NCBI RefSeq assembly: GCF_002113885.1
Contig: NW_018406583.1
Coordinates: 873,478-937,477, forward strand
DNA: 64,000 nt
Origin: Mizuhopecten yessoensis
Taxonomy: Eukaryota
Reading direction: 5' to 3'
Part shown: piece by piece, positions 25,579-47,031 of the stretch
Layout: the number at the start of each line of letters is the position of its first letter
Position numbering within the stretch: the first letter of the stretch is position 1
Notes under the pieces: model-generated
Seen by the model: the letters and a program-made list of their open reading frames with translations, nothing else
What the model was told of the DNA's origin: nothing
Databases searched by the model: none
Position numbers and translations under genes: made by a program

Positions 25579-26721
25579 ATGACTTCGCGAAAATCCAAGA
25601 AGCAGATAATTGTCACGACGGTAATTCTATTCATAGTTGGTAACATAAGTCTGGTGTTTGAGATTAGTTCTGTTGAAGAATCGTATGGTCGTAGAAAGCT
25701 TATCATAAGTGGCAATATGTATCAAAACGTTTCTATCTTTCAACATTATCCTCTTGATGTAGATCTAGCAAATGTTGTCAATGAGGCAATATTACATAAC
25801 ACAAACATTCCGTATAAACCCATTAACCCGTATTCCTATAAATGTATACACACTCCTGTTCCGTGTGATTTTAAACGAGCCGAGAATGAAAGCAATTCAA
25901 TCCTTATCGTTGTGAAATCACATGTACTTAACACCAACCAACGACTTGCTATTCGACATGTGTGGAAGAATGCACGTGACAAACGCGTTCGGCTGGTATT
26001 CCTGCTTGGAACTTACAGTTTAGAAGGCGAACAATGGCGGATTGAAAAAGAAGTTAAACTGTATCACGATATCGTTCAGGGAAACTTCGTCGACAGTTTT
26101 GATCACATCACATACAAAATAGTTATGGCATTTAACTGGATCGATAGACATTGCACCCAAGCTGACTTTTTGCTATTCGTTGATGATGATTTCTACGTGT
26201 ATCCGACAGCAATGTTGACATTTCTAAGACAACTACCAAATCAACAGGATACATTTATTGGAAAAGTAATACAGAAACAATTTGTTAAACATAATTAAGA
26301 TATTCAAAAAACGCCTAAATTTAGGCATTATACATTTAAGGAAATACCGACGTATGTGCATGGTGGATCATTCGTGATGTCACAAGACACGGCGCACAAG
26401 TTTCATATAGCTTTTCCCTATGTTAAATACTTTGAAATTGATGATATCTATCTTGGAATTGTGGCACAAAAACTCGGCATCCATCCGCGGCATGACTCGC
26501 GTTTCGACACCAGTAGCCCCCTGGCACTAGCCTTTGAGTGTTCTCACTTTGCCCCGAGACTGTTGAAAGGGGAGTGTCCCCTATCTGGATGGCGCAGGAC
26601 TCTCCCTCCTGTAACAGTAACACAGGTGACAAAGAAGCCCGATACCTTCTGGGTACGCCTCAGGATGTTACCCCAAATAATGAAATCTGCAGCAAAACAG
26701 ACGTTTCATTCATTTGTATAG
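25579..26721 (+). pseudogene. GT31 gene with a single in-frame TAA at 26296-26298 (G3); pseudogene, null allele or base error
   Basis: ORFs 25579..26298 and 26356..26721 are in the same frame (offset 777 nt). Reading through gives GKVIQKQFVKHN*DIQKTPKFRHYTFKEIPTYVHGG, the same length as the matching segment of G2 domain 2. FVDDDFY, IDDIYLG and ECSH are retained. Acceptor ends at 25392. Confidence 0.85.
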
Positions 26722-29700
26722 GATATAACAATGTTCTTTTAGAACCATAAGTACTCATAAGTATTTGCAATAAATACATATTTGATAAGTTTACGTTTTA
26801 CTGTTGACATGTACTTCTAGTTACATTATCTGATATCTTTTTTTCCAATCAAAGTTCTTTTATATCAAATCATGTAGTCTAATGTGAGAAGGCGTGATTA
26901 AGTTGAGATATCTTATCATTCGCACTGTTCTTGCACTGTAGTTACATGTATTTCAGTCGTACATAAAACAGCACATATAAATGTAGATATTGTTACATGC
27001 AATTACAGCAGTGACATTTGCTAAAGTACTATTTCAAAAATGTACAAATCCTTGCCCAAGTTTCAAAACGTTTCTTAACTTAAAGAAATGCCTTAATTTA
27101 AATCTTAAGAAAAGGAAATTTTCCTTGAAGTTTGTAATTTCCCCATGTAAAGTGTAAGGTTCGAAAGACTTTACTTGGGTAAGGTAACGTTAAGGAAAAT
27201 GGAATATTATATAATTGCTATGACATAACATTGTGAATTGAAAACATAGCTAACGTTTCTTTCTTGCAATATTTCAAGATTTAGATTATTACAATTTCTA
27301 ATTATGAAATAAAAATCAAGGTCATTCTCAAAAATGCATATCTATCTCTTATTGTATCAATAGCAGGAGGCAACAAATCTGAATAGAAACAACATGTGTT
27401 AGAGGGAAACCTCGTCCGTTTTCCACTCAGAAAAAAGCTTACTCCGCTAATATAAACCTTCTATGTAGTGTTTAAAACAGCGTAAATGCCTAAAGAGTAG
27501 GTTAATTTGCGGTTTAAGGTTAGCTAATCCGTCGACAATCACTTTCATTATGACTTCCAATAGAATAAATAAATTTAATTCAAACTTATAAATGTCGATA
27601 AATAAATCCTCAAAACGATATATGTTTTGTTAAAGACCTCAGTGGTTATGATCACTTACGCTCTCTGCACTCCTGGAATATGTCATAGCAAAAAGTTAGG
27701 CTCAGTGTGCGCCACCTTCTGATAAATCAAGAAGACTAGCTTGATCCATTGATGTATATCAAAAGAATCTCGCGGTCGCAAAACGGTAAAGTTGACTAGC
27801 TTTGAAGTCGGGGCCGCTCCTCAGTAATCTTCAAATGAAAGATATCAGCCTAGTGACTGGTCAGGGTACTTTTATCTGAGAGTAATAAAAAAAGTAGTCG
27901 CGCGCCTTCAATTTTGTTATGACATATCCCAGGGTTGCAAAAATCGAACGTGAGTGTAACCCCTGGAGTATCGAGGATGGCCCTGAGGATATATCAGGTG
28001 TAATTGTGCAACTTGTACAAACCTCTAGTTCAATACCTCCTCTTAAAAAGGGCAGGATATAAATCAGTAACGATAAGTGAATACAATATGTATGTATTAC
28101 CGTGCGAGTTTGAAACTAAATTCTTGCAGTGTTGACATTTTAAACTTATCACCTGTCGCAATATAACCCTTCCCATATCATATCATGTATCAACAGGAGA
28201 CCCCAGATGTCCCGAAGGCAATAGGGCTAATATAGATCGATGGCTAATATAGATCGAGGGCTAATGCGGGTTAGGATGTGGAAGTGGTCCTATGATAACA
28301 TTGCTATCATATACTGATCGTTATATATATTTGTCTACAATATCAAAAGGTTAAGCAAAAACAAAACTCGAGTGTAACGGAGGCATGTTTTCTAAAATGA
28401 GTTGATGACAAAGAACTATCGATTAAAGGGAGGTAATTCTCGAGCAAGTTTTAAACGATTTCAAAATATTCATTGAATAAGGTTACGCTGGCTCTAAATG
28501 ACCGGAGTTGATGATGGGCTGTGAAATAAAAGCACACACTTCTCACATTTGGCGTTCGGTACGTAAACCTTAATCAAATTACGTGTAGGTTCCTTTGTCG
28601 CATATTTGGCAATATAAGAGTTAGTTTTATGGACTTGTCATGTCAAGACATTTTTTGTGTAAGTTGGGCACTGGCTCTTAAGGTCATAGGAGTGTGTTGA
28701 TAAACGGAAATAGGAAGTACATCTCTAGTTGAAAATCCAATGTAGGGAGACAGTATCACAATTTCCGCATATTCTAATGAGTCAAGAGCTGTGATGAATA
28801 TTGCATGTTTATTAATGACAGAACAGTGTGTTCTCTCAATATTAAAGTATTTCAAGGCAATCCAGGCATTAATTCAGATCTTTTTTTTATCAATGAGTCA
28901 CATGTGTCCATTTTTCTATACTTCAGGAAACCTGCTACCTAGCTATTACAACTGTGTAGTTTTTCAAGAAAGATAACTCTTACATGCAATTACTATGTGT
29001 ATATGGTTTTATTATAAAATGTAATTTTAAAATTAATTTTACACAATTTCAGCATTTATTAAATTAATAAATATTAATGCAATACTAATTTCTGTCAGTA
29101 TCATTTTTATTGACATTATTTTGCAAAAAAATGTGTCTTTCATTTTTGTTTCAAAATTCACTCCTAATTACATAAATTTCCATTTAAAATCATTAAAATT
29201 CTGACAACCTATATTTTTTTGTGGCAGAAAATTTTCTTTACTTCAAAGCAATATAACTACAAAATTTGAAAAAAATCTACTGAGAAATGGTGACACAATC
29301 ATATTACCTTGGACAAATGTAAACGTTATTGATAAAACAAAATTATTAACAATTTATACTATTGATTTATTTGTACGTTTTCAACTTATAAATTGTTATT
29401 TGCAAATATGAAATCAATTCGAGTTTGGATAATGTATTTGCCTTCATTTGCCAATATGCTATTGCCATGTTGACAAAAATACATTTCCGGGTATTTTTAC
29501 CATGTACGCTGTCAAAGAACACACTGCACATGATTTAAATAAGAAAGTTAAACACACAAAAAAATGTTTCAGAATGCACCAAAGACATAATGAAAGAATC
29601 TTACAACAAAGATGTATGGGTGTTCGTTTACGGAATGACTTGTATTTTAGTAATAGCCATACTTTTATAAACGCTAAATAACGTACGTGAATACACTGTG

Positions 29701-31489
29701 GTTGTAATTACGTATAATTCCATTTAAATTCTTTTTTATCATTTTATTGAAAGGGTTCTCAAAATATGACTCTCAAAAGAAAACATGTTGACCCAACAGC
29801 ACTTCAACAATCTTGGACACTAAAGCGGATGAATAAAGGGGTCTCACCGTGTTATTTAAATCAGATGACTAAGCGTCTCATTGACAAATGTAAAAATGGC
29901 GGCTAACGTTACCGTGCCTGCATTGGAAAGGATTGTAGCTTTTTTTATACTGGTTACCATGAATGAATAACATAATTCTTGTTAGTGTTCAATAATTACT
30001 AGAAATATTAAATAAGGAAGAAGTTAGAATGAAAAATTAGAATGATAACATTTGTAACAGAATTTACGCAACGGATTAATAATATATCTCTCAATATTGA
30101 AACGTGTATTCTTCGTAAATATTTATGGGGTAAATAAAGCAATCATGTCCTCTGTTAAGTTGCAAATTCATTTCAACAAGATTTCTTTTGATAATTAATA
30201 ATGTTTGATAAAATTCTAAATATAGCCTTTTATAACTCTGCCGAATCTCTGTCAAGGATCCCCATACCACTGCCCAAACTGTAGATATACACTAGAAATT
30301 GTTTTCCGGTATGACTATAGCTTAGATAAATCATTGTTGAAAAGAAAACAAAACCTTGAAGGACTGTTCTGAAAAGAAATAAGGAATGTGAAATATGCAA
30401 GATATAATCAACAAGAGTGTTCTGCCGGCATTGAGTGGGAATCGAGTCCTGGACTTCAGATAGTTATACTAACGCTCTAACCATTGAGCCACCTGGTCAA
30501 CTAAGTTTACCTTACCGATAGTGTAACAGTAACGTCCGTAACTGAATTAAGCAGAGGTTACTGTATAACTGTATATTCAAAACACCACAGTTCTTAGGGA
30601 CAAGGATCTTTAATAAAAAAAAATATCTTTATTTGGAAGCACGTGTACAATGCAGACGCTAGCCGTGACGTCATTGTTCGACCAATCCGGTCTTTCTGCA
30701 CCAAGACCTCGAAACGAGATGGTCACGGGTCAAAGAGTCGATTTACCCGGCTAGTCGAGATTGACACTTGAATTGTTTTGTTAATCAATACGCCCTACCT
30801 TAAACATGTGTTGGCTTGTAAGTATATCAACTGTACCCTGATTGAGATATCCCGTTACTTGATCAGGGACTTATAACATTCATGACAGTTTCGAGTTCAA
30901 AAACCTTCTATTGTTATACCTTTGATTAAATGAATAAACATCCGATTTCCTCCCAAGTATTGCAACACGTTAAGGCTGTTATTCAAATATTCTCTAGTAT
31001 GACAGGGTGTACTTTAATGTGTGACAGCTCTGGCAACGACTGGTCCTTGAAGCATTTAACAGGTGTTTTTCAGGTAATAATATACATTGTTTTGTCACTA
31101 TCTATTTATAGAAGATATGATAGTTCTTTGGTATATAAACTCTCAGTTTGTTGTCATATTGTCTGCCGACGTTGATGATATATTCCTCATCTCGTATATC
31201 AAGTAATCATTAACATGTGACAAGATGGTTGATTCTCTCAGTGGACTATCAGTCCCCTAACTTGGCCGTAACCGTGTAGCTGGAATTTATTTTGGCACGA
31301 TGTTACATGAAATACAATATTGAAAATAGATTACCTGTTGTCGCCAAAAGTTGTAAATTTGTTTTGTCATAAAGGGTTTTATAAGTATCTTTCCCCTTTT
31401 GATCAATATACACATACTTCTAAACATTTTCTTGGTCAGTATGGATAATGAAAAGTTATTTTTACACAACCATATAGTTGTTATATATG

Positions 31490-31790
31490 TACCGAAATGA
31501 CTCGATTCAGCTACGCTTTGTTTAATCCTTGGTATTAAGGTATAAAACAAAGCGTAGCTGAGCCGAGTCATTTCGGGACATTTATAACAACTTTTGTACA
31601 TACGCTTACAGCGTAGCCGAGTCGACATCGGTTTTGTGGACAACTCGTACACATTTTACATCTTTGTGTGCATACGCTTCACTGGCCATTTGTCTGATGA
31701 AGGTGACAGTGTACATATCGTACAAGTCATCGAAACGTCACATTGGAAAAATTGTATTGGTTGTGTAAAAAGAACTTTTTATAATAATAC
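31490..31790 (+). mobile_element. Dispersed repeat (Penelope pLTR-like) with hairpin; related copies at ~62150-62435 and ~63140-63445
   Basis: Hairpin ccgaaatgactcgattcagctacgctttg...caaagcgtagctgagccgagtcatttcgg; a ~150-bp block is shared in reverse orientation with the 62-63 kb copies. Confidence 0.75.
31686..31746 (+). ncRNA. Minimal type I hammerhead ribozyme motif (Penelope-like)
   Basis: TGT-CTGATGA-a-GGTGAC[loop]GTCATC-GAAA-CG-TC^-ACA; helix I (TGT/ACA) and helix II can pair. Confidence 0.6.
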
Positions 31791-32251
31791 ACATACATAC
31801 GTTCGGAATATGTTAGCCATTTCTTTTGGTCATTGGTATCACACTGAGTCTAACAAATATGAAATAGACATGCCGTACTTTATTTGGCTTTTGGCATTGA
31901 CATCCTCAGTTTTGAAATAGGCTGTTTCTTACTTAATATATCGAGTGATTATCTCGTTATAATCAATTAAACTGTTGTATTTAAAAGTACAAGATTTGCT
32001 CATGATTACGGATTTATTTGTTTATATTCATAAAAGTATTACCTGTTATACTTTTATACTAGCATAGGAATAATAGCAACTTTCATGTTTATGCTTGCGT
32101 ATGAATTTTCTATGACAATCTGTAATATTTTGGTTTTCATTTTTCTGCAGAAACGGTTATCAGAAGAAATGACATGAAATCGAAATCAACGCCCACGATA
32201 GTGTATGTCCATGCCTTTTCACGCATAGAAGTATAACTAACCATTGCTACT

Positions 32252-34396
32252 ATGGCGAAATGGACGGTTACTCGACCTCGCTGTCCCTTGTTTCATCCTA
32301 TCTTTGCCGTAAGCCTGATCAGTGTTCTTGGCCTGCTGTTACAGATGCTGAATCTTGCCCTGAAAACTACAAGTAGGCCATCCATTTGGGACAGTGAAGG
32401 AAACATTCACTCATTCCTAATTCCAACGGACGAATTAAACTCATCTGACATTGAATACCTGTCGTATCAAAAGGCTTACGCGTATCCCCCTGAAGAAGGC
32501 AATCTGTCTCAGATGATTAGGGATTACATTTCACATGACAAACCAATACCCCTTAAAGTTATCAATCCTCATCCATTCTCATACATACATCGTCCGTTGC
32601 CATGCAGTTTCGATAATGGTGCTTCTGGCAAGATGATTGTGCTTATAAAGTCCTTTGCTTTAAACTTTGGATTTCGAAAGGCTCAAAGAACACTCTGGAA
32701 GAGCGTGAACCAGACATCAATGTGCTACGTGTTCATGCTAGGTTATAACGGTAATCCGGGTGTTCAGAGGAGGATAAATGAGGAAGCCAATCGCTATAGG
32801 GACGTTATGCAAGAAGATTTCATCGATGCTTACTTCAACAACACTTACAAAACAATCATGGCGTATAACTGGGTAGTACGATATTGTCCCGACGCTAATA
32901 TTTTGCTGTTTCAGGACGACGATTACCACGTTAAATGGAATGAAGTTGCAATCTATATGCGGAAACAATTCCAGGATAAGAGTGAGAATGTGTATTGTGG
33001 TAGTCTGGCCCTTAATGCCCCTCCATATAGAAAGGAGAATACTAAGTGGTTTCTTACTTTCCAGGATTATCCTTTTGACCTGTTTCCGCCGTACATAGGA
33101 GGGGGTGCATATGTTGTGTCTTTTGATGTCGCTCAACGATTTCAACGTGCATTCTCTTATGTCAGGTATTTAGGTATAGATGATGTCTATCTCGGCATTG
33201 TGGCCCAGAAACTGTCCATTCGGTCAGAAAACGAGACTCTCTTAGACACAGTGAACAGAGATTCACTAGCTAAAGAATGTTCGCATGTCGTTGATAACAT
33301 CATTAATGACAAATGTGATTTAGCTGACAGGAAGCGGGAAATATTTGAGCTTGGGTTGCAGACGACAACACTTCCAACTAAAGCCATAGTACTTGTAAAT
33401 GGTCAACCAGTTGAGGTGGATGATACTATATATTTATCATACGACGAAGAATTTGCATATCCTTTGAAAGTAAGACTTGATGAAGCAGTGAAGGGTGTGG
33501 TACTATACAACAACAAAATTCGTTTTTCTCCTATCAATGTTCATAATTTTTCGACAATAAATCAGCCATTGCCATGTTCATATCCGTCGCAAACGGGGAG
33601 ACATCAAAACTTGCTCATCCTTGTAAAAGTAGATTCAAGCAATTACAAAATACGCAATGAGATCAGATCTTTGTGGAAATCTCTTAATGATCCTGCGATC
33701 AGAGTGATATTCCTGCTAGGACATTCCTCGAAAATTCAAACTCGAGTCGACAAGGAAAGTGCTCACCACAAAGACATTCTACAGGAAAAGTTCAAAGAGC
33801 ACCATATGCACTCTACCCGCAAAATTGTAATGGGATTTAACTGGGTAGAGACCAAATGTTCTAAGGCCGACCTGGTGTTAGTGTTAGAGAGTATATACCA
33901 CGTTAACTCGACACAGATGATAGATCATCTGCAAAGATTATCAAAGAAGAAAGACGTTTTCATAGGTAAACTTTGGAAAAATGTTAGTCCTCACAGAGAA
34001 AAAGATAATAAATGGAAACTGAGTTATGACCATTATCCATTTGACAAATTCCCTCCCTATTTGTCAGGTGGAGCTTTCGTGACATCTTTTAACATTGTAC
34101 GTAAGTTTAAAATTGCTTTTCCATATGTTAAGTACTTCGGAATTGACGATGTTTACTTGGGTATAATTGCAAAGAAGCTTCGCATAATACCGACACACGA
34201 CTCCTACTTTGAACCTCTTAGCACAATAGCTCTTGTTAAGAGGTGCCCTCGAGAGTTTTATAGGATCGTTAATGGACGATGTGTGGAGCAGAATTCTCTT
34301 CCGTCGTCAGGTTCTAATAAACATTATATGTGCAACATTTTTCTTTACTTTTACCTTTCTGCGTACTCTTTTATTCAAATTTTATATTTCTGCTGA
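32252..34396 (+). CDS. Tandem two-domain GT31 glycosyltransferase; domain 2 lacks DxD; hydrophobic C-tail (G4, 714 aa)
   Basis: TM anchor. Domain 1 has LFQDDDYH, PPYIGGGAY, GIDDVYLG, ECSH. Domain 2 has LVLESIYH in place of DDD but keeps PPYLSGGAF and GIDDVYLG. Acceptor ttttctgcag ends at 32150. Confidence 0.92.
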   Translation: MAKWTVTRPRCPLFHPIFAVSLISVLGLLLQMLNLALKTTSRPSIWDSEGNIHSFLIPTDELNSSDIEYLSYQKAYAYPPEEGNLSQMIRDYISHDKPIPLKVINPHPFSYIHRPLPCSFDNGASGKMIVLIKSFALNFGFRKAQRTLWKSVNQTSMCYVFMLGYNGNPGVQRRINEEANRYRDVMQEDFIDAYFNNTYKTIMAYNWVVRYCPDANILLFQDDDYHVKWNEVAIYMRKQFQDKSENVYCGSLALNAPPYRKENTKWFLTFQDYPFDLFPPYIGGGAYVVSFDVAQRFQRAFSYVRYLGIDDVYLGIVAQKLSIRSENETLLDTVNRDSLAKECSHVVDNIINDKCDLADRKREIFELGLQTTTLPTKAIVLVNGQPVEVDDTIYLSYDEEFAYPLKVRLDEAVKGVVLYNNKIRFSPINVHNFSTINQPLPCSYPSQTGRHQNLLILVKVDSSNYKIRNEIRSLWKSLNDPAIRVIFLLGHSSKIQTRVDKESAHHKDILQEKFKEHHMHSTRKIVMGFNWVETKCSKADLVLVLESIYHVNSTQMIDHLQRLSKKKDVFIGKLWKNVSPHREKDNKWKLSYDHYPFDKFPPYLSGGAFVTSFNIVRKFKIAFPYVKYFGIDDVYLGIIAKKLRIIPTHDSYFEPLSTIALVKRCPREFYRIVNGRCVEQNSLPSSGSNKHYMCNIFLYFYLSAYSFIQILYFC

Positions 34397-36102
34397 TGAA
34401 ATAAGTCTTATTATTATAATGACAATTGATTCTCAATTTTGCTAATTTTATATTATAGCTAGCCATTTGGCATTTTGAAACATGTTGAATTGGAGAAAAA
34501 TAATCTTTATCCAATATTAAGCGATGGTACTTTGTACAAGAATATAATGTCTAGCCCTCAGCAGAGCCTGAGACTGGAAATTTCAGAATGTCGAGATTTT
34601 GCATGTTTACGCGATAGAAGATTGCTTTTCAGATAGTTAACTTTATACTATCAAACTGCATAAAAGTTATTAATGTTATAATATTCTTTTCTTGGCTTTT
34701 ACCATATTGATATGCATACAACATTTATTTACATACAAGATGTGTATTATTTGTGTATGTATTGTCAAAATAACAGTATCATTTTCCTTATTTGAACCTG
34801 TTGCCAATCTGTATCACAAAAGATTTCATTTAATACATGCTTAACATCCATCCAAGTTCTAAGAATGAATTATATATAATATTTGCAATATTTCATTAAA
34901 AAAAATCGATGCAATGTTCATTGTGTTATGTAAAACAATGTATTCTATTATCTTGTTCATTTTATCAAATACATTAAAATACATTGTATGTTATTTAACG
35001 GTTAAGGTATCATCATCAATAAACATTTGAATACAAACTGACCTTTTTATGAATTATGTTTCGTAAAAGAAAAGAAAAAACCTAATGAACATTTTAGCAA
35101 ACAGCGTTTTGGCCCTCGCATTGACATTATGCTTAATACATTAAGATACATTTTCGAACAAGATATCGATATATTCGGCCATACAAGTGAACTATTACAG
35201 GAACTTTACCATTTTTGTTTGTTTATTTCATTGTGTAGTAGCTACAACAGCGAAAATTTCATTTCACCAAAACAGTTGGAGGTATTAAAATCCACGATTG
35301 CTAACGAGGCTATAAGCCATTTTGAATGGCTACTCAACCCAACTGTATTTCATTTGTTTTTAACTTTAGCTTACTGAAATACGATAAATTGTGTATTTAT
35401 ATAAACATCTTGGTGTATGCATCAACCATGCACCAATGCAATTGATACAAAATGCTATTCTGCTCGGTAACAGTGTAAATATCTTTTGTCCCCCTGGCTT
35501 AAATGTAATAAAGGATGAGTGTCTACAAGGCCATTTTTGGGCCCAGGCATATTCGAATTTTGCCCTTCTAAATTGTCCTACTGTATTGCATGCACAAAAA
35601 CTTTGACCGAAGGTGAGATTTTGTGGGTACAAAAAAGAGGTAAGTAAATCACAAATAAAGTTTGCTGTTTTCAAAATGAGCTTAAAAACTGAAAAAATTC
35701 CATTTCTGTTTTTGAAAACATGTGTTAACTAAACATATATATAAAAGAATTTAAAATGACAGAAATTCAATCGTCACTTTAAAATCGTTTATAAAAAACA
35801 AAGGATTAAGTCAGGATGCTTTTAGGTAGTTTTCAAATGAAAAGTGTTTTGTTTTCTCAATCATTTCCTTTCTTATATATATTTTGAGTTGAAATTTTTA
35901 CAGTGTTCATTACGTTCAAATATATCAAAATCTACTGGCACATCGTTGAACACAAGCCTTCGATAATTATGGTACTGTCTATAAATTGCATTTTAAATCA
36001 ATTTAGATATTATTGAATGAAAAACCTTTACGATAATTTTGAAACCATGAATAAATAAAACTAAAAACACAAAAAAGATAAGTTGAAATATTTAAGCTTC
36101 AT

Positions 36103-37251
36103 TTAATGTTTACCAGATGTAAATATTTGTTGAAAAAACAGTAGTGATTTCTGAATCAACATCATCATATTTGTAAATACATCTGTCAAATTCTTTATTG
36201 TATATTCAAACCCTTTAGCTACACGTCCAGTGGAAACATATGCGACAGTTTGACATCGTGCCGCCAATAACTCTGAGGGAGTATGGGAGCATTCCTTTGT
36301 AATGCTTAAATGGTCTCTTCTCGACAGTTCTGTAGAGTGCCTTGGAGATATTGACAATATCTGAGCGACTATCCCTAGGTAAACGTCATCTACACCAATA
36401 TATCTGACGTAAGGAAACGCCATTTTGATTTTTTTGCTGACGTCATAAGAAATGACATAAGCCCCTCCCGCTAGGTATGGTGGATACGATCTAAAGGGGT
36501 ACACTTTAGGATCGACAAACCACGAAGATCCTACATTCCTATACGGTTGTGCCCGCCTTACAAGGTTTCCAATGAATAAATCTGTGTGATTCTTTCCGGA
36601 CTGGTATAGAAATTGAACCAGTTTATCCCATCTTACAAAATAGTCATCATCTAGAAATACCAACAATCGTGCCTCAGAGCAATACTGAGTGGCCCAGTTA
36701 AATCCCATAATAGTTTTGAAGGTATTGTTAGAGTAGGCATCAACAAAGTTTTCCTGTATCAGATCCCCGTATGTTTCATTTTCCTGAGTAATCCTGTCTT
36801 TATAATTGTCTCCAAGTCCTAACATAAATACGAGTTTAACACTTGATCGTGTAGCTTTTCTTGCCATTTTTCTTATAACAACTCTTTGGTCGATGCTTCC
36901 CACAAACGATTTCACTAACACCAGTGTATAAGGCTGTCTTGAATGTGTAAAATTGCAAGGTGATGGGGAGTAATAATATATGTAGGGGTGAGGGTTCACT
37001 TGTTGTCGAGGAAGTGGGATATTATTATTTAAATGTTTTTCTACAACCTCCCTGATGTCAAAGGTCAGGGGATAGGTATATTCCTTCGCGTTAAATCTAC
37101 TATGGTCGTTTTTTCTAGGATGAATATTGTTTTTATTGACGTTTTTGATATTGATATATAATAAATACACAAGAAATATTCCTAATAAAATACAATATAA
37201 CCGTTTTCTCTTGGGTACCGATGGAAACATTATGACTTTTCCCATATACAT
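36103..37251 (-). CDS. GT31 glycosyltransferase, single domain (G5, 382 aa)
   Basis: KRKR followed by TM (LYCILLGIFLVYLLYI); LVLVKS, LIQENFVDAYSNNTFKT, VFLDDDYF, PPYLAGGAY, GVDDVYLG, ECSH. Confidence 0.93.
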   Translation of the reverse strand: MYMGKVIMFPSVPKRKRLYCILLGIFLVYLLYINIKNVNKNNIHPRKNDHSRFNAKEYTYPLTFDIREVVEKHLNNNIPLPRQQVNPHPYIYYYSPSPCNFTHSRQPYTLVLVKSFVGSIDQRVVIRKMARKATRSSVKLVFMLGLGDNYKDRITQENETYGDLIQENFVDAYSNNTFKTIMGFNWATQYCSEARLLVFLDDDYFVRWDKLVQFLYQSGKNHTDLFIGNLVRRAQPYRNVGSSWFVDPKVYPFRSYPPYLAGGAYVISYDVSKKIKMAFPYVRYIGVDDVYLGIVAQILSISPRHSTELSRRDHLSITKECSHTPSELLAARCQTVAYVSTGRVAKGFEYTIKNLTDVFTNMMMLIQKSLLFFQQIFTSGKH

Positions 37252-39340
37252 TACTCAGTTATCCCATCAATGTTATATATGTGTCCTTAAAATATTGTTA
37301 AACAAACAAATAAACAAAAACGAACAATTATTTATGTTCGGAAATGCAGCTGATCAAATGACATGTGTGATTTACATGTACAAAGGGTATATGCAGCAAA
37401 ACCTTAGAATCATGTCGTCTGTATACGGTAAAACATTGGTACGACGCATGTTGCTTATATATACAGATAAACCTCAATAGTATGTCATTTGATTTTATAA
37501 AGTAAACTTTGATATCATTCCCCTCGTTTTATTTGCCTTCGTATTTATCACCATTATAGTTTTATTTTTCCTTTTCCTAGGTTTTTTTTCTACTTTCCTG
37601 TATACGTTTCCCTCCATATATCGTCAAATGATCCTTATATATAATACCAAACCTTTTAATGTAACTGAGAAGAACGTCTGATTTATACAGAGTCCTGCAG
37701 TCCATTTGGGTCTCTGAATAAATAATTCATAAGATATCCGGGTTGGGAACCCATTTTTCTAACTTTGATGATTTTCTATGCGAAAAATGTTGAGTCCGAG
37801 TCGTTGATAAGTGTGCCGTTGGTTAGTGAGTATGTCGTCAAACTCCCTTTATAATGCCAAATCTTGTAATGTTGCTTAGAAGAACGTCTGGTTTATACAG
37901 AGTCCAGGTTTATATAGGATACAATTTAGATGAAGTTTCTTGTAAACGTTCAAATCTTCAGAAATCATCTTTGTCGCCGACACATCAGCCACTCAGTCAA
38001 ATTAAAAAACAGGAATATATAGTTTCCTTGTGTAGATCTGTCACCTTTCTCGAGTTGTTATTCCATGTTGTCGGCAAGTAAATCCAACCGTTAAAGAAAT
38101 CTGTCCTACAATACAAATAATACATATAATTTATTTGAATAACTATTTCATGGTAAATAACTAGCTTTATATTGAAGCACGAAATTATTTTTCATATTTC
38201 TATTTCCCCAAACTAGCTACTATAAACTTGTTGGCGGAAAGATTATGTGTTTGTTAATGTTCCAATAGCGATATGAAAGTTATTCAATACGATATAGTGA
38301 TAACTTCATATTAACGAAACCTTGAACCACAAACCATAGCGTCAACACACAAGGACAAATATATGATGACACATATTTTCCCTACATGCAAATGTACCCA
38401 TTGGTTGGATCATAGTCTCGCGGAGATTGGTGATATGTGATATTAAATCGGTGTCACTATTTTTTGAAACATCAGGTCAATATTCACTTTATGATGTCAT
38501 TTTAATTATAACGTCACACTGTTCTTAGCCAAATTTAGTACTTTCCTCTGTACAATTTTCACACGTGCCGTTTTTTTTAATGATGAAATGTTACTGAGTA
38601 TCTTTAATAATAATTAAAGACTTTTATTTTGGTGAATTTACCTCAATAAAATTCCATAATTGACCACTATGCCACAGCGTCCAAATGCAAGGATAGAATT
38701 AAAATATTCCAAAGCGCCCAGACTAGAGGATAAAACATCCAATTGACTCAACACACAAGGACAACCTGGGTCCAAATACAAGGATAAAATATACTTGTTG
38801 TATTCTAAAAGCAATGTCCACTATTTTTAAACAAGTATACGACTACATTTTTGCAAATACCATAACCGAATGATCTGGATGCTAAGAACACTATTTCTAT
38901 TTCAATATATATAGAGTCCGCACTCCCCAGCATTATTAGAATACATTTTGAAACATAACTCTCTGAAATATGACGAATATGACAGTCTAGTGCTTTTTTT
39001 TAAGAAAGGTAACTCTATTTGTATATATATATATATATATTATGATTACCTTTGTTGGTCTTAGCCTTTGTTTCCAAAACTGCATGTTGATGTTCATTTT
39101 GCCCTTGTATGTTGGATCATTAAGTATACATAATGCACTTGTCTTGCATAACCTGGAATCTGAAACTGTAAATTGTTTTTTAAGATCGCCCGACTACTGT
39201 GAACGGCCGTTAGGTGTACGTATAGGTTACGTTTGGGTTAAAACACCACCTGCATTGTAAAATATCTATTGTTGTCTGTCACGTGGCGTCACTATTGTGT
39301 CTAAGTGTAACGTCAATTGTTGATCATTATCACGACCTAC

Positions 39341-39415
39341 GACACAGATATAAGGACATTTTATCACAAGTCTACCTTGACACAGATATAAGGACATTTT
39401 ATCACAAGTCTACCT
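39341..39415. repeat. ~38-bp direct tandem duplication
   Basis: gacacagatataaggacattttatcacaagtctacct occurs twice. Confidence 0.85.
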
Positions 39416-40687
39416 AAGACACTACATTTTTTCATTATTGTTTTGTGTATTCGATGATGTATTGACATAAGTTAATCTTATCATACACTTGTTCCAAAAG
39501 ATATTTTCCGAAAATTCCGTATTTATCATAGCGTTAAGTTAACAGTGCTTGAAAACTTTAGTCTTGTTAGTTGTAACGGTTTATTGTTTGGTATGGTTTT
39601 GTTACAAAAAAAGTATGAAGGTATTTTATCATTTAATTCTTGTCATTGAAGAAGAAACTATACTAAGTTCGAATATTATGTGAAACAAAAATAATGATCA
39701 CAACGATATATAAAATATCATAACTTGATTTTAGAATTAACTTTATACCTAGGAGGTTCCTCACTTTGATTGAAAAGCTGTTATCTCGATGAATCAAAAC
39801 AACTATGATATCCAAATCTGTATTGTGTTATTTTTGGAGATATTGTATTTTGAATTATTGATCGTTTATAGCTAACAGATCTGATAGAGCTTCAATTTAA
39901 AAAGGAGCTTTTTTATAATGTTCAAGATGGAACGGTTCATGTCAATGAGCAATGTCAAACAGTTGCCTTTTGCATGAACATGATTACTTAATGTTGCCGT
40001 AAACAATGCAAACAACAACATATAGGTGCACATATCATAATAGAAAATAACGACGATATTGGTAATAAAGGAATTCATGGTTCAGTAGTTTTCATATTGG
40101 GTCGATACTGGTTGACTTAAAAAAAATAAAAATCTAGAAATACTTTAATATCAAATGCTTATATGAAGTTATATCTAAACGGTATTTTGGATAATACAAA
40201 TGCTTTCCTTTTATCTGGTTTTCCATGATTTTATTTCTACATGACGCTGAACGATTCGTACATAGCATAGATAAGAGGGTGACATGATCAAAGTTGACAT
40301 ACTTATGCTAATTTTCAAGAAAGTTGTAGTCATATTAATATTCATTAATATTGTAACAAAATCAATTGCTGAATGACATATATCCAGGATAGACAGATAA
40401 CCTGCTTGTCCACCAGAGTTACATCCCTTGCGTAGCATGTAGCCACAGTACTTACATTCAATAAAGACACGAACGAGATACAAATTAGTGTATGTTTTAT
40501 TTTTACCTGTTTATTAAATAACTACAGCAATTTTTAAACAATGCTACTTTTTATAAATCTGGTATTATTCTTAATTACAATAAGAACTTGAGCCCTATCC
40601 CTTTGACTATTCAGTATCAATACAATATGTTTGAATGGTAAAACAAAACTTAATTACAATGATAAGACAAAATACGTATCTACACAG

Positions 40688-42649
40688 TTATGGGTTATCT
40701 CTAAAGAACGAGGTCTGGTTCCTCCTATCAAAATGTGGATCATGGCTCGGTATTACCATTAGTTTACTCGCTACTATTCCAAGATACAGATCAACATTAG
40801 GGCAGTATTTGACAAATGGAAATACAACATGGAAAGACCTGACGATGTTAAATGACATGACGTAATTTGAACCAATCACAGACGGCGGAACGTGATCAAA
40901 AGGATAATCTCCCTCGCTCACATACAAAGGTGAGCCTTGTCGTCTATCGGGATTCCTTTCATCAACAACGTGACCAAGAAATACACCATTATTATTGTTT
41001 TTAGTTTTAATGAGTTTCTTCATAAATGCAGTTATCATGTCGATATCTACATTGATATTTCCATCAAGAAATATAACGAAATCAGTGCTTTTGCAATATT
41101 GCACAATCCATGCGAAGGATGATACTGTTTTAATGGTATCAAAGAATTTGTCTTTCACTGCAGAGACCTGTATTATGTCACCATAATTCTTACTTTCAGC
41201 ATTTACGTCTTTCTGATGGATATCCTCTGATCCTAGTACGAATACTTGTCTGACGGTTCCTATATCCGTATATTTCCACATCTCCCGAATGGCTGACCGC
41301 TGCTCTGTGTCGGTAGGATCAGACCAGATGACTACAAGAATATGGGCCGCGTCGTGCCCTTTCGTCGTAAACTTACATTGAGTCGCATTGTGTACAAGAG
41401 GTAGTAACTTTCTGTTGGTTGGTGTTTGAGGTATCTCTTCGCAATGAAGAATTTTTCGCTTCACAAGTCGTCTTAAATTAATATTTAGAGGATACGAGAG
41501 TAACTGTCTAGAAATGTTTTTACCTGCTAATGCAAATAATGATAATGGATTTGCAGGATCAAGATAAGGATCATAAGTCTGTTGTACTGACAAAATCCTT
41601 GCAACATTGCCTAGGTAACCATTTATATCATTGTCACTATTTTTAATATAGGGGAAAATAATTTGAAACTTTTTTGATACATCACGTGACACAAGGTTAA
41701 CGTTGGAGAAGGCAGCCTTTGTCACAGCAGTGTTACCAATGAACCCCGATTTATTAGGTGGTAATGATGGTACAAGATCACCACGAAATAAAGGTGATGG
41801 TTTAAGAGTCACTAAGTCTCTTATGTACTCGAATAATATGTCTGATCTTACTTGAAGCGTCTCGTTAACGCTGAGGATAACGTCGGCTTTAGAACAATGT
41901 TTAACGGCCCAGTTGTATCCCATTATCAACTTTAGAGTACTGTTCTTGTAGGAGTCATGGAAATCCTCCTGTAGAATATCTCTATGCCTGTCACTCTCTT
42001 CCTCAATCACATATTGGTCGTCCTCTAGAAACCCCAGCAGGAACACTAGACGTGTATTTGGATCCTTCAGTTCTCCCCAAGTCCGTCTAATTATCTTTCT
42101 ATAATAATAATTTCCGGGCCGCGAGTACATCAGAATTACGATTTTAGAACGGTTTCCGTGGAAATTGCAGTCACTTGGCAAGGAAATCGGTTTATACGGA
42201 TGTGGGTTCGTTGGTGGGAAGGGTGAACCGCCGATTCGGATATTTTCTAGGACAGTAGTTATGTTCAAATCTGTCAAAGATTTCCTTTTTTCCTCTTGTG
42301 CAGTTGTCGTAACGTTCGTAATAGCTTGGAGCTGACTGTGAACCGAAATGGCAAGCGAAGTATCTGACGCTTCTTTTCTACTTGTGTTGCCAAAGCTGTT
42401 AACATTAGTAGAACAAAGACTTTCTGACTGTCCTCCGAATAAATGGCAATCCACTACAGGGCGTCTATCTTTCCTGTTATCGGGAATCTGCTCCAGTAAA
42501 GAAAAGTTCATCTTGTAGATGCATTCAAGGGTTGCAAACACCATCAGGATACCGATCATTTTCACAATAACGCTTCTCCTGGTGAAAAGAAACAGTACTT
42601 GTAACAGTTTGTTTCTGATCGCTTGATAGTGCAACAGGACCAAACCCAT
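40688..42649 (-). CDS. Tandem two-domain GT31-like protein with both catalytic sites degenerate (G6, 653 aa)
   Basis: GT31 scaffold motifs (RRTWG, VFLLG, DILQEDFHDSYKNSTLKLIMGYNW, DIIQ, YPFDHVPP, YLG) occur twice. The DxD positions read SVNET and FLDGN. Acceptor on - at 42670-42671; candidate donor gtaaga at 43121-43126. Confidence 0.88.
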   Translation of the reverse strand: MGLVLLHYQAIRNKLLQVLFLFTRRSVIVKMIGILMVFATLECIYKMNFSLLEQIPDNRKDRRPVVDCHLFGGQSESLCSTNVNSFGNTSRKEASDTSLAISVHSQLQAITNVTTTAQEEKRKSLTDLNITTVLENIRIGGSPFPPTNPHPYKPISLPSDCNFHGNRSKIVILMYSRPGNYYYRKIIRRTWGELKDPNTRLVFLLGFLEDDQYVIEEESDRHRDILQEDFHDSYKNSTLKLIMGYNWAVKHCSKADVILSVNETLQVRSDILFEYIRDLVTLKPSPLFRGDLVPSLPPNKSGFIGNTAVTKAAFSNVNLVSRDVSKKFQIIFPYIKNSDNDINGYLGNVARILSVQQTYDPYLDPANPLSLFALAGKNISRQLLSYPLNINLRRLVKRKILHCEEIPQTPTNRKLLPLVHNATQCKFTTKGHDAAHILVVIWSDPTDTEQRSAIREMWKYTDIGTVRQVFVLGSEDIHQKDVNAESKNYGDIIQVSAVKDKFFDTIKTVSSFAWIVQYCKSTDFVIFLDGNINVDIDMITAFMKKLIKTKNNNNGVFLGHVVDERNPDRRQGSPLYVSEGDYPFDHVPPSVIGSNYVMSFNIVRSFHVVFPFVKYCPNVDLYLGIVASKLMVIPSHDPHFDRRNQTSFFRDNP

Positions 42650-44437
42650 GATGGAAGGTTAATACACTTCTGAAATGAGAAATAGACAGACGACCAATTA
42701 AATAATGCTGCTGATTTCTATTATAAATTCCTCGTTTAGTCTTTTTTCCAAGATGAAGGGCGGAAGTCTACTCTTTCCTTATAAAATATTTTCGATGAAA
42801 ATGAAATAGTTCGTTTTCATTTTCGTAGTTTCAGTTTAAAAGATATATCATTGGTAATTCCAAATATGGTACATTTTATGAACAAACCAGATCAAATGAG
42901 TAACACATAGTCGCCATAGTCAACACACGTTTCAAATTGTGCTAAATATAGCAATATGTATATATATCATAATGACTCAATACTGTAATAAATCAACCGA
43001 AACCACCTGTATTATATCTATGCTAATTTGATGTTAACAGAGATAGCAATTAATGTATACCTATATACATATACTACCGACACCCTACTTAGTATATTTC
43101 TTATAATAACACATATTGCTTCTTACCTTTCATACTGGGTCTGGCGAATGAAAATTTCTTACAAGACATAAAATATTTCTTCCACATTTTAAACAAAATA
43201 TCTATGAAAATCACATATTCTATACAAAAGCATTCAGCGAGTATTGTTAGTCATTGTTCTGTATTTATTTTAATGTAATTAACACTAAACAAAAACCTTT
43301 GTTATACATACAAACATTTAAAATGGCGTTTTCAAAGACACAATTATTTAAGACTTATCGTATAAACTATCGCACTTCAAATATTTAGTTAAGTCGGTCA
43401 ATCAGCTCTTTATTATCAACAATCTATTTGTAAACAAACCCTTTACAGTATTGTCTTTTACGAGTCAGTAAACATTGTAAAATTACTAAGGAACGATAAC
43501 CAGGTGTCAAATGTCGAATTAAACAGTTTGTTTTGAGGAGTGTCGATACCCTGGGATAGATTTAAATATTTGATTGGAGGATATGACATTTAACAAAACC
43601 TTAAGGTACTAAAGAACCAAGTCGAATTTGTATTTGGCAGCCTATATCTAAGCGTAGATCAAGTGTTCACTGGCAGCGGTCCCTAAAATATTGAATTTAT
43701 ACGGACAAATGAAACTGTCGTTAAGGCGACTTTTGGAATTTTGTATTTCTAGGTTTGAAGCAAAGAAAAATATACGCTAGTAGAGGAATGTAGTTTAACT
43801 TTTTATACAAAAAATAAGGGGCTTGTAGCCCGTCTTCAAAGGTGCATGAATATATTTTTGTACAACATGTAGTCAATCAAAGTCAATTAAAGTCATTTAA
43901 AGTCTTGTAATTGTCAAAATTATTTGGACATTGGATGTAAACTCACATGCAGATGTATTTGTAGATTTGACCTGGATTAACATGCCGATTGTCGTCAATG
44001 AAGCAGAAGACGCTTACCCTTCCGAATCACCTGGTCTTATACTTCTTCTTCTGTTTCATTGGTCTCCATGTTAATCTTTCCTTTGATGACACTTACTGTT
44101 CTTTTTCGTTTTCTTTTTAATATGATGCAGTTATATCAAATTGTTATTAATGTGTATTGAACAAACAGTTAATTATTGTCATACAGACTTCGACATTGTC
44201 GTTCATATTAATGGCTTATTAATTTATTTTACAATTTTGTAAGGACAAATTAACTTATTTGCGATGTGTTAATGTAATTTTAACAATAGCAAGGCCCAAC
44301 TTTATGTGTTAATAATAAAACTGTCTTTTTCATACACATCTACCTCCGCACAACTATACGTGTTCAAAATAAATAAATTGTAAACAGATTTACCCAATGG
44401 CACTTTTCAAAGATGAACGCAACACACAAACACATAG

Positions 44438-44468
<31 letters not shown>

Positions 44469-44471
44469 CAC
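44438..44471. repeat. (CA)n microsatellite
   Basis: Run of ca dinucleotides downstream of G7. Confidence 0.9.
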
Positions 44472-44760
44472 GTGACTGCACCTTTAAAATTTTGATAATA
44501 GATTCAGTATGCCATAAACAAGTTATTCTGCATCATACAGCTGTTTCGTAAAAATTCAGCATTAATTCCCAATCACGTTTAAATGTTCGTGATTCATTTT
44601 GCAAAAAAAGATGGGTGGTGGGGATGATGAGGTAGTGATGGCAGCGTTTAATTTCATATTGATTTAATACCAGGTGATCATAGAAAATATCCAAATGAAT
44701 CATTTCCGGAAAGTTAATAACAAAACAGAAAGCCAAGTACGATTCGGTTGACTATTTATT

Positions 44761-47031
44761 TCATGTTACATCAACAACAGGTAATTTTGATTTGATTTTA
44801 ACTTTCCTTATTACTGTGATTTTTTTGGGTGTAGTTTTAGTTTTGAGTAGATCCTTTGATGAAATGCATTCTTTTGTAATTATCTTCGCAACAGACGAAT
44901 CCGGGCACTCGGCCACAGCCTCGAGTTTTGGCGGATCGACAAATATACTGTCTTCCTTGGGTTTTACTTGTAATTTTCGCGCTACAAAACCTAAGTATAC
45001 GTCACTTCGTCCAAAATATTTCACAAATGGAAATGCAACTTGAAATTTCCAGGCTACGTCTGATGATATAACATAAAACTTTTCATTAAGAAATGGCGGG
45101 AACTTTTCCAATGGATACGTTTTCCGTGACAGGAATAACCGTGAATCTAAATCGCGTGTTGGATATGCGTTTTTAACTAACTTTCCTCTAAATATGTCTG
45201 ATGATTGCTTGCTTGGCAAAACGGTCCTTAAGTATTTTAAAGTTCTGTTGATATCAATATCATATCCTTCCTTCAATACAACGATGAAATCTGCTTGAGC
45301 ACAGAACTTAGCCGCCCAATTGAACCCCATTATTGTTTTTCGGGTACTGTTCATATAATCGTCCCGGAAGTCCTCCTGAATGACGTCACGATACTTCCGG
45401 CTTTCCTCGTCAACTAATGATTGTTTCGAGCGTCCCATCCCTAACAGAAAAACTTTCTTGAAGTTATAGTCTCGATGAATGCCCCACAATTTTCTCAGAT
45501 ACAATCGCTCTTCTACGTTGGACGCTTGCGACTTGACTAAAAGAAGAACGTTTTTTACGTGTTTGTCTGCATGAAGGAAAGAACATCTGTTTGGGCGATG
45601 GACGTAGTTGTAGGGATGCGGGTTGATTGGTGGAATGCTAGAGTCTTTGTGACGTAGAAGTTTATCGTTCACTAGTTGCGTCATGTTAACCATCAATGGA
45701 TAGTTGAATGTTGAGTTATCTGTAAGGAATTTACCATCAGGTAACGGAATGGTTGGTTTCAGAAGAAGTCGGCGTTTCCTATCCGCTATTTGACAATTCC
45801 CTGACACAAGCTCTGCTGGGTCGTGCGAACATTCTTTTGCCAATGAAATGTTAGAGAGAGTTGAAAAATGAGCGTCGTATTTTGGGGTTATAGCAAGTTT
45901 TTTAGCTACAATTCCTAGATATACATCATCTATTCCTAAATATTTTACGTATGGAAATGCAACTTTAAATTTCCTTGCCACATCTTTGGAAAGCAAATAT
46001 GCCCCGCCTCCAATATATGGTGGAAAGTGATCGTATGGATATTCATGGAAACTTGTTTTCCATTTTGAATTTTCGTTCCGTTCTGGCTTTGCAGCTATAG
46101 CAGTTGATCCGAGATAAACGCCTGTTTTATTCATCTTTTCGATTCCTCTGATGTATTTAATCAAAGCGTGAGGCTGAACGTGATAATCGTCATCTAGAAA
46201 CAACAACATGTCGGCCTCCCAACAGTTCTTCATTGCCCAGTTGTATGACATAACCGTTTTCAAAGTGTTATTCATGTAGGCGTCTAAGAAATTCTCTTGG
46301 ACAATATCATTATACTGGCGGACCTCCTCGTCCACCAAGGCCTGATAGGACCCGTTGTAACCTAGCATGAACACGCGCCGTACGTAGGGGTCACGCAAAT
46401 CCCTCCACATCGCCCTTACCGCCGCCCTTAGCTCCATATTTGACACGGCAGATTTAATAAGCACCAATACCGTTTTCGTGCTGTTGTTATGGTGCGGGAA
46501 ATGACACTTGGGAGGAGGCTGGATAAAACTGTATGGGTGAGGATTGATCTGGCGATAAGGTATGCGCTGTTTGAACACTATCAGGTTGTTTACAAGACGT
46601 TCTAAGTCTATTTCCAACGGATAAGAATAACTGTCGTTGTATGATAAATATTTACGAGATGTTTCGTTAAATTCTTCTTCATCCTCTGGTCCCACAAAGA
46701 CGGAAGGTAGTTGTATTTCCATATCATCAAATCGTTCATCGTAAAAGCTGTTATCCAAGGCACCGTCTGCTTCTATATCTATCACCGTATCGGTAACGTT
46801 ATTTTCAGTTTCAACTACTTCTAAAGGTTTCCGAAATTCCTGTTTGATAGCTGTTTTTCCAGTCACTATTATGATATCGGTTTTTTGAATCATGTAAGAA
46901 AAATTAAGTAAAAGTCCAAGAAATCCAAACAACAACACAGCAAAGAAGAAGCAAAAAATGCTCTTAATATTTAGTTGTTGTATCAAAAATACATGCGTTA
47001 TCTTTAACTTGTTGCTGACAAACTTGAACAT
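44761..47031 (-). CDS. Tandem two-domain GT31 glycosyltransferase; domain 2 degenerate (G7, 756 aa)
   Basis: TM anchor and acidic stem. Domain 1 has LFLDDDYH, PPYIGGGAY, GIDDVYLG, ECSH. Domain 2 has VVLKEGY, PPFLNEKFY, GRSDVYLG. Basic C-tail. Acceptor on - at 47220-47221. Confidence 0.92.
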   Translation of the reverse strand: MFKFVSNKLKITHVFLIQQLNIKSIFCFFFAVLLFGFLGLLLNFSYMIQKTDIIIVTGKTAIKQEFRKPLEVVETENNVTDTVIDIEADGALDNSFYDERFDDMEIQLPSVFVGPEDEEEFNETSRKYLSYNDSYSYPLEIDLERLVNNLIVFKQRIPYRQINPHPYSFIQPPPKCHFPHHNNSTKTVLVLIKSAVSNMELRAAVRAMWRDLRDPYVRRVFMLGYNGSYQALVDEEVRQYNDIVQENFLDAYMNNTLKTVMSYNWAMKNCWEADMLLFLDDDYHVQPHALIKYIRGIEKMNKTGVYLGSTAIAAKPERNENSKWKTSFHEYPYDHFPPYIGGGAYLLSKDVARKFKVAFPYVKYLGIDDVYLGIVAKKLAITPKYDAHFSTLSNISLAKECSHDPAELVSGNCQIADRKRRLLLKPTIPLPDGKFLTDNSTFNYPLMVNMTQLVNDKLLRHKDSSIPPINPHPYNYVHRPNRCSFLHADKHVKNVLLLVKSQASNVEERLYLRKLWGIHRDYNFKKVFLLGMGRSKQSLVDEESRKYRDVIQEDFRDDYMNSTRKTIMGFNWAAKFCAQADFIVVLKEGYDIDINRTLKYLRTVLPSKQSSDIFRGKLVKNAYPTRDLDSRLFLSRKTYPLEKFPPFLNEKFYVISSDVAWKFQVAFPFVKYFGRSDVYLGFVARKLQVKPKEDSIFVDPPKLEAVAECPDSSVAKIITKECISSKDLLKTKTTPKKITVIRKVKIKSKLPVVDVT

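Follow-up and report, generated by a model that had tools for sequence, protein, structure and literature searches.

Two genes in a 64-kb stretch of the Yesso scallop (Mizuhopecten yessoensis) genome, the whole of which is referred to here as the window, encode tandem proteins of glycosyltransferase family GT31 in which one half appears to have lost its catalytic metal site while being maintained as a protein. In both G4 (32252-34396, + strand) and G7 (44761-47031, - strand), domain 1 has the canonical GT31 motifs, whereas domain 2 has lost both of the residues that hold the metal ion. The second half is nonetheless intact, expressed and under strong selection, and because of this it is expected to have some job. 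We regard it as fairly likely that domain 2 is a selected pseudoenzyme half, which may aid substrate recognition for domain 1.

Both proteins belong clearly to the Galactosyl_T branch of GT31. The Pfam Galactosyl_T profile (PF01762) scores 248.7 bits for G4 and 230.4 bits for G7 (cut-off 23), in each case over two stretches that cover both halves, and domain 2 of G4 by itself matches B3GALT5 with E 4e-24 (HMMER). The Fringe profile gives only a weak match, with E of about 1e-4 as compared with 1e-68 to 1e-80 for Galactosyl_T. G4 and G7 are read as type II membrane proteins of the B3GALT/B3GNT/brainiac-like type, derived by tandem duplication of the entire catalytic domain. The features of the two genes are listed below, with amino acid (aa) positions where they apply; DxD, the glycine-rich (Gly) loop, xED and the C-terminal histidine (C-His) are the four motifs compared, and AF2 denotes AlphaFold2 models.

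G4:
31007-31070, + strand: 5' untranslated region (UTR) exon (spliced RNA contig)
31071-32147, + strand: 5' intron, GT..AG, 1077 bases (gap in RNA contig)
32148-34846, + strand: main exon, with the remaining 5' UTR, the entire coding sequence and the 3' UTR (RNA contig)
32252-34396, + strand: coding sequence, 714 aa, two-domain GT31 (open reading frame, Pfam)
32297-32362, + strand: N-terminal hydrophobic helix, predicted signal anchor, aa 16-37 (AF2)
32450-33370, + strand: domain 1, canonical GT31 (structure alignment, motif table)
32909-32929, + strand: domain 1 DxD site, DDD at aa 222-224
33095-33112, + strand: domain 1 Gly loop, IGGGAY at aa 282-287
33173-33205, + strand: domain 1 xED site, GIDDVYLG at aa 308-315
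33272-33289, + strand: domain 1 C-His site, KECSHV at aa 341-346
33425-34336, + strand: domain 2, predicted GT31 fold without metal ligands (alignment, AF2)
33881-33901, + strand: domain 2, ESI in place of DDD, VLESIYH at aa 544-550
34061-34078, + strand: domain 2, Gly loop kept, LSGGAF at aa 604-609
34139-34171, + strand: domain 2, xED site kept, GIDDVYLG at aa 630-637
34238-34255, + strand: domain 2, KRCPR in place of KECSH, KRCPRE at aa 663-668
34319-34393, + strand: C-terminal hydrophobic helix, aa 690-714 (AF2, helix 690-713; orthologues)

G7:
44761-47031, - strand: coding sequence, 756 aa, two-domain GT31 (open reading frame, Pfam)
46882-46968, - strand: N-terminal hydrophobic helix, aa 22-50 (AF2)
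45745-46662, - strand: domain 1, canonical (motif table)
46180-46200, - strand: domain 1 DxD site, DDD
45997-46014, - strand: domain 1 Gly loop, IGGGAY
45913-45936, - strand: domain 1 xED site, GIDDVYLG
45820-45837, - strand: domain 1 C-His site, KECSHD
44809-45732, - strand: domain 2, degenerate (motif table, AF2)
45259-45279, - strand: domain 2, KEG in place of DDD, VLKEGYD
45073-45090, - strand: domain 2, NEK in place of GGG, LNEKFY
44989-45012, - strand: domain 2, RSD in place of IDD, GRSDVYLG
44896-44913, - strand: domain 2, CPD in place of CSH, AECPDS

The catalytic positions were assigned with reference to B3GNT2, for which the metal ligands are D247, the last residue of DxD, and H376, the C-His; D245 contacts the donor sugar, D246 the ribose, and D215 and K223 the uracil, the Gly-rich loop is 305-307, and D333 is the catalytic base, hydrogen-bonded to the acceptor galactose as well (PMC7948508). 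The original prediction had named DxD and the late histidine as the metal ligands, which agrees with this structure. In HMMER alignments, the ESI of G4 domain 2 falls in the columns of the B3GALT5 DSD and of B3GNT2 D245-D246-D247, and its IDD lies under I331-D332-D333. A DxD with the metal-binding last Asp is thus present in domain 1 of both proteins (DDD) and absent from domain 2 (ESI in G4, KEG in G7), and the C-His is present in domain 1 (CSH) and replaced in domain 2 by Arg in G4 (CPR) and by Asp in G7 (CPD). These replacements, and the retention of DDD, GGG, xDD and CSH in domain 1, had been read from the DNA in the original prediction; they were borne out by direct reading of the open reading frames, and the ESI of G4 also by the alignments to solved structures.

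The two second domains have eroded to different degrees. G4 domain 2 loses just the two metal ligands; the acidic first residue of DxD, the Gly loop (SGGA) and the xED Asp (IDD, within the GIDDVYLG noted originally) remain, as do the equivalents of B3GNT2 K149 and K223, and the residue matching L151, which stacks on the uracil, is D, N or S. G7 domain 2 has gone further, with the Gly loop (NEK) and the first Asp of xDD lost as well and the second Asp kept (RSD), so that the list of losses first drawn up, DDD and CSH, was accurate as far as it went and incomplete for G7. On these grounds G7 domain 2 is regarded as catalytically dead. The xED Asp (D633 in G4) and the uracil-contacting Lys (K524) are invariant in 16 aligned tandem proteins, dead halves included, and K459 is nearly invariant among them. 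Four cysteines occur at equivalent positions in each half, at 118/212/343/355 and 442/536/665/677 in G4 and at 176/270/401/413 and 483/577/709/722 in G7. The expectation that frame, cysteines and scaffold motifs would all be preserved in domain 2 therefore held for the frame and the cysteines; of the scaffold motifs, G7 domain 2 reads DVIQEDF and FPFVKY instead of DILQE.F and FPYVKY.

Structure prediction is consistent with a folded second domain. The AF2 models were built from a 103-sequence alignment in which MAFFT had set most single-domain homologues against domain 1, which leaves a shallower alignment for folding domain 2. Mean predicted local distance difference test (pLDDT) values were 86.3 for G4 and 81.7 for G7; in ten-residue blocks, values were mostly 83-99 in both domains, about 84-98 over G4 domain 2 and mostly 83-96 over G7 domain 2, and the order of strands and helices is alike in domains 1 and 2. 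The predicted template modelling score (pTM) was 0.58 for both proteins, and the linkers (G4 371-396, G7 429-439) had pLDDT below 50. We are confident from these models that each domain 2 has a GT-A fold, whose packing relative to domain 1 the models do not fix. A Foldseek search of the PDB returned B3GALT5, B3GNT2 and B3GALT6, all single-domain, as best matches (target template modelling score 0.65-0.81); no two-domain match was found in this library, which predates the entry for the human glucosyltransferase B3GLCT discussed below.

The degenerate motifs are conserved between species. Each gene has orthologues from two other scallops. For G4 they are P0002 of the bay scallop, Argopecten irradians (69% identity), and P0003, a public-run contig (63%); for G7 they are P0012 (77%), which matches the genomic A. 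irradians copy at L005 5144-7417 with 99.6% identity, and P0011 (66%). From G2 to G7, the order and orientation of the genes agree between the clusters of A. irradians and the Yesso scallop. Within the G4 clade, domain 2 reads ESI, EDM or DDS at the DxD position and CPR in 3/3 species, the whole of KRCPR being identical in 3/3 orthologues. The G7 clade has KEG, KEG or KDG, with CPD, RSD and the loss of the Gly loop in 3/3. In the tabulated domains of the scallop family that have a canonical DxD, the motif is DDD in all and CSH accompanies it in nearly all. The degenerate motifs are confined to a few well-supported clades and are therefore not scatter.

The original prediction had turned on domain 2 being neither truncated in relatives nor evolving with dN/dS near 1. 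Reading frames were whole in every G4 and G7 orthologue seen. Pairwise Nei-Gojobori (NG86) estimates of dN/dS were dropped, since for most pairs dS had reached saturation or could not be defined (dS >1.4 or undefined; dN for domain 2, 0.13-0.32), and maximum likelihood (ML) codon models were used. These gave ω, as rough bounds given three taxa per clade and saturated dS, of 0.09-0.10 for domain 1 and 0.09-0.12 for domain 2 of G4, and of 0.04-0.05 and 0.074-0.075, respectively, for G7. Across the two second domains ω is thus 0.07-0.12, far from 1. Between two G7 alleles of A. irradians there are 7 synonymous and 3 non-synonymous differences. The degenerate half is always the faster in protein sequence, by 1.1-1.7 times, also in a third clade in which it is the N-terminal half that is degenerate. 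Together, these sequence comparisons point to strong purifying selection on domain 2 of G4 and G7 and not to decay.

Evidence of spliced mRNA was obtained for G4 in the Yesso scallop and for G7 in the bay scallop. A 2763-nt contig from run X1 matches 31007-31070, skips the 1077 bases of a GT..AG intron and continues through 32148-34846, with the whole G4 open reading frame and thus both domains coded in one exon. Between 86 and 94% of the words of the G4 stretch are present in 14 probable RNA assemblies from 5 studies. No reads were found on the G4 open reading frame in three raw M. yessoensis RNA sequencing runs, and for this reason its expression is probably restricted by tissue or stage. 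For G7, the A. irradians orthologue contig ends in AATAAA and poly(A) and its first 20 bases differ from the genomic locus, which identifies it as mRNA. The public G7 model, P0010 (710 aa), begins at an internal Met and omits 46 N-terminal residues including the anchor (46894-47031, - strand); the longer open reading frame agrees with the A. irradians mRNA and protein.

Two further features of G4 were recorded. Within its 5' intron, 31388-31781 has very high depth in all RNA runs, and the reads there mostly continue into unlike sequence, with some joints linking opposite strands; this pattern suggests that the segment belongs to a repeat or transposon family that is abundant and expressed. Besides the N-terminal anchor, a strongly hydrophobic C-terminal stretch occurs in G4 (34319-34393, + strand), at the end of its orthologues too, and in the single-domain gene G1 (7290-7364, + strand), and could be a second membrane segment or a glycosylphosphatidylinositol (GPI)-type signal.

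G4 and G7 belong to a larger series of scallop tandem proteins. The domain table and trees distinguish four kinds. Proteins with two live halves form the G2 clade, and the G4 and G7 clades have a degenerate C-terminal half. In a third kind (P0006, P0007, P0009 and P0013, from Mizuhopecten, Pecten and run contigs, with loci outside the window), the N-terminal half is altered (NDN, CSD) and domain 2 has DDD; two members of this clade lack the His in an otherwise canonical domain 2 (CSK, CSN), and the C-His seems from these alignments to be more labile than DxD. The fourth kind, dead in both halves, comprises G6 and its A. irradians orthologue, with NET or DET in domain 1, DGN in domain 2 and no C-His. 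The orthologue (L001 20223-21797, - strand) has DET and DGN, an open frame and 54-57% domain identity; with the same motif states kept in it, even the dead-dead protein is conserved.

Every tandem clade was supported at 100/100, and the deep nodes were unresolved. The closest relatives of G4 and G7 are scallop single-domain brn/B3GALT-like genes. The ML domain tree requires four changes of state, and its well-supported branches are compatible with a single change. In the full-length tree G4 and G7 lie on the same side of one branch (support 78/81), and their dead domains have in common four otherwise rare residues, two of which lie beside the metal site (Val for Phe immediately ahead of DxD, and Pro for Ser immediately ahead of the C-His position). 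The G4 and G7 losses may accordingly represent one ancestral event rather than two. On these sequences it is plausible that the His was lost once, in a common ancestor, and that DxD eroded later and separately in the G4 and G7 lines. P0003, a member of the G4 clade, still has DDS in domain 2.

What might the second domain do? Domain 1 would be a normal Mn2+- and uridine diphosphate (UDP)-sugar-dependent inverting β-1,3-transferase, judging by its motifs. Without its two metal ligands (the C-His and the final Asp of DxD), domain 2 would be unable to carry out canonical metal-dependent transfer, and it would instead be a folded, disulfide-stabilised GT-A module acting as a pseudoenzyme partner within one polypeptide. 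A model for such a role is offered by the human β-1,3-glucosyltransferase B3GLCT, a GT31 enzyme whose inactive second GT-A domain is essential for acceptor binding (PMC13597200, Journal of Biological Chemistry 2026). In like manner, the scallop domain 2 may bind or position an acceptor glycan or glycoprotein for domain 1, and in G4 it may do so with what is left of the old pocket, in which the xED Asp, the uracil-contacting Lys and the Gly loop are still present. We consider it quite likely that domain 2 is a functional module without catalytic activity; that its specific role is the binding of acceptor or substrate is a tentative proposal by analogy, with somewhat less than an even chance of being right. 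We infer the inactivity of domain 2, the acceptor binding and the cooperation with domain 1. The original prediction had offered chaperone, dimer-mimic and lectin roles side by side; sequence and AF2 do not separate these, and acceptor binding or substrate positioning is favoured. Several points weigh against it. With a pTM of 0.58 and linkers below 50 in pLDDT, a B3GLCT-like cleft would be conjectural. The analogy is also loose, in that the dead domain of B3GLCT is N-terminal, truncated and without a working xED, and it binds its substrate away from the vestigial site (PMC13597200). The xED Asp and the Lys might have been kept for folding and not for ligand binding, and the variation of the third DxD position in G4 domain 2 (I, M, S) argues against continued use of the old donor site and indicates no new role. 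The coarseness of the ω estimates counts on the same side.

Loss of DxD and C-His would not by itself prove inactivity, because the GT14 and bacterial GT6 enzymes are metal-independent and because loss of the C-His can be offset by water or Asp in GT-A enzymes (PMC7185993). G4 domain 2 might thus be a metal-independent transferase, in which the two Arg of KRCPR neutralise the UDP diphosphate in place of Mn2+ and the protein has two active sites. GT14 and bacterial GT6 enzymes that lack DxD do use basic side chains in this way (PMC7185993, PMC7948508), KRCPR is the same in 3/3 orthologues, the first DxD residue, at the donor-sugar position, is acidic in each (E, E, D), as in MGAT1, which has Glu there (PMC7948508), and the Gly loop, the IDD and the K149 and K223 equivalents are kept. 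We nevertheless consider this improbable: positions two (S/D/D) and three (I/M/S) of DxD vary by species, which is unexpected for a working donor site, the L151 equivalent varies (D, N or S), evolution is faster in domain 2 than in domain 1, and no metal-independent GT31 member was met in the literature, which was not searched systematically for one. The same proposal is much less likely for G7, whose domain 2 is without the Gly loop as well and has the C-His replaced by Asp rather than by a basic residue. There is by our estimate only a small chance that G4 is a single-chain enzyme with two active sites and that the paralogue series captures a switch in GT-A enzymes from metal-dependent to metal-independent chemistry.

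A structural partner that binds no ligand, either one half of a covalent GT31 pseudo-dimer or a Cosmc-like folding aid, serving stability, exit from the endoplasmic reticulum (ER) or Golgi retention, is unlikely in our view, although precedents exist. Homodimers are formed by B3GNT2 (PMC7948508) and by C1GalT1; the latter needs Cosmc, a GT31 paralogue that lacks DxD, in order to fold, and Cosmc may act at the dimer interface; and CHSY depends on CHPF, an obligatory partner whose GT31 and GT7 domains lack the motifs. A live-live protein such as G2 would also be a plausible starting point. However, Cosmc is without xED (PMC7185993), yet all scallop dead domains retain the xED Asp; many single-domain paralogues, among them G1 and G5, do without a fused partner; and the linker is predicted to be flexible, with domain packing of low confidence. 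That domain 2 is instead a functionless remnant on its way to loss is very hard to credit. Its catalytic residues are indeed gone, it evolves 1.1-1.7 times faster than domain 1, and a true pseudogene, G3 (TAA at 26296-26298), adjoins; but the frames are intact in all orthologues seen despite saturated synonymous sites, ω is 0.07-0.12, cysteines and fold are conserved, and so are the degenerate motifs themselves (CPR in 3/3 species, CPD and RSD in 3/3). A selected, non-catalytic partner domain that assists domain 1 with its substrate remains the reading that we prefer.

Tandem GT31 proteins are not confined to scallops. An exhaustive profile search of 1.84 billion representatives returned further proteins with more than one GT31 domain, among them a Mytilus protein with two intact domains and proteins of about 720 aa from Holothuria and Patiria (P0078, P0097) with a degenerate first and a canonical second domain. 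In these echinoderm tandems the dead half is N-terminal, unlike that of G4 and G7, and the domains resemble one another more closely than they do those of scallops, which indicates that the echinoderm tandems arose independently. In the hemichordates Ptychodera flava and Saccoglossus kowalevskii, proteins of 1245-2159 aa with 4-7 GT31 domains were found (P0037, P0038, P0039, P0045, P0046), in which intact and degenerate DxD are mixed, according to predicted gene models. The echinoderm and hemichordate proteins are unannotated or generically named. Our literature search found nothing specific on tandem Galactosyl_T-Galactosyl_T proteins or on invertebrate GT31 pseudoenzymes, and the architectures given in a GT31 phylogeny paper are X/GALT and FRINGE/X only.

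In the field of glycosylation, partner proteins that are pseudoenzymes have begun to emerge as a theme, with Cosmc, CHPF, EXT-type pairs and, since 2026, B3GLCT. To our knowledge, almost all of the known examples are from vertebrates. After Cosmc, CHPF and B3GLCT, a dead GT31 half comes as little surprise; the value of the present case as a good experimental system lies in the paralogue series and in its recurrence in other phyla. A single lineage, the scallops, provides the natural series, part of it in a cluster of 41 kb, with each state conserved between species, and the genes are compact, intronless and suited to testing what a dead GT-A domain does. The scallop series, the independent echinoderm tandems and the hemichordate arrays together suggest that new ways of handling substrates have repeatedly been reached by duplicating a GT31 domain and silencing one of the copies. 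For annotation, tandem proteins such as G4 and G7 should not be counted as two active transferases.

The window contains seven intronless open reading frames of Pfam Galactosyl_T (GT31), and the span 32252-47031 holds G5, a single intact domain, and G6, with both halves degenerate, besides G4 and G7. The other five are as follows.

6120-7367: G1, single GT31 domain
19238-21409: G2, two GT31 domains, both canonical
25579-26298: G3, GT31 open reading frame shortened by a stop codon
36103-37251: G5, single GT31 domain, intact
40688-42649, - strand: G6, two GT31 domains, both degenerate

The G3 region (25579-26724, + strand) holds a gene for one GT31 domain, with the four motifs all present and a single in-frame TAA, at 26296-26298, beyond which the frame runs on to about 26724. 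Its syntenic A. irradians counterpart is whole (L001 5852-7003, 383 aa, 58-65% identity). G3 would be either a recent nonsense pseudogene or a null allele, and its stop, as read from the sequence, gives a picture of real decay, in contrast to the intact domain 2 of G4 and G7.

The DNA of the window is AT-rich, with GC of about 0.32-0.40, and has a single N, at 62642. A minisatellite with a 30-bp unit, in about 27-31 copies with 86-95% match, occupies 11970-12903 and accounts for a local GC of 0.445 and an AT skew of 0.21; a 263-aa open reading frame at 12080-12871 (- strand) is a by-product of it. From 56001 to 60000, GC is raised to 0.43-0.44 and GC skew is strongly positive (up to 0.18), which sets this region apart from the remainder of the window.

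Among known systems, the GT14 enzyme C2GnT and bacterial GT6 enzymes have lost DxD, as G4 domain 2 has, and use basic side chains for the metal, and G4 domain 2 has conserved Arg residues where the metal site used to be; they belong to other CAZy families, and in the scallop protein the donor-site positions are variable and any activity is putative. CHPF1 and CHPF2 have motif-less GT31-like domains that bind neither UDP nor Mn2+ and are obligatory for an active paralogue, but there the pairing is between chains, the architecture is GT31, cystatin-like and GT7, and the GT domains add little to the interface. Cosmc (C1GALT1C1), the non-catalytic GT31 partner to which the original prediction pointed and which the literature confirms as such, is a GT31 paralogue with neither DxD nor transferase activity that assists an active enzyme of the same family, C1GALT1. 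It differs from the scallop domains in being a separate gene product that acts in the ER and in having lost xED too; in the scallop proteins the dead domain and its partner share one chain, and the xED Asp is invariant.

B3GLCT is the closest precedent for G4 and G7, closer than Cosmc. It has two GT31-type GT-A domains per chain, from internal duplication, one of which is without a functional DxD or C-His and has been kept, in this case for acceptor binding; in sequence and predicted fold, G4 and G7 likewise have two GT31 GT-A domains per polypeptide, one of them without metal/UDP ligands. The B3GLCT dead domain is N-terminal and truncated after helix α-5 (no hypervariable region 3, HV3), with no working xED and with EEE at DxD, and that of the scallop proteins is C-terminal and full length, with the xED Asp and four cysteines. 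B3GLCT also lies in the Fringe branch, and G4 and G7 lie in the Galactosyl_T branch, with B3GALT5 and B3GNT2 as the nearest structures. B3GLCT and the scallop tandems have independent origins.

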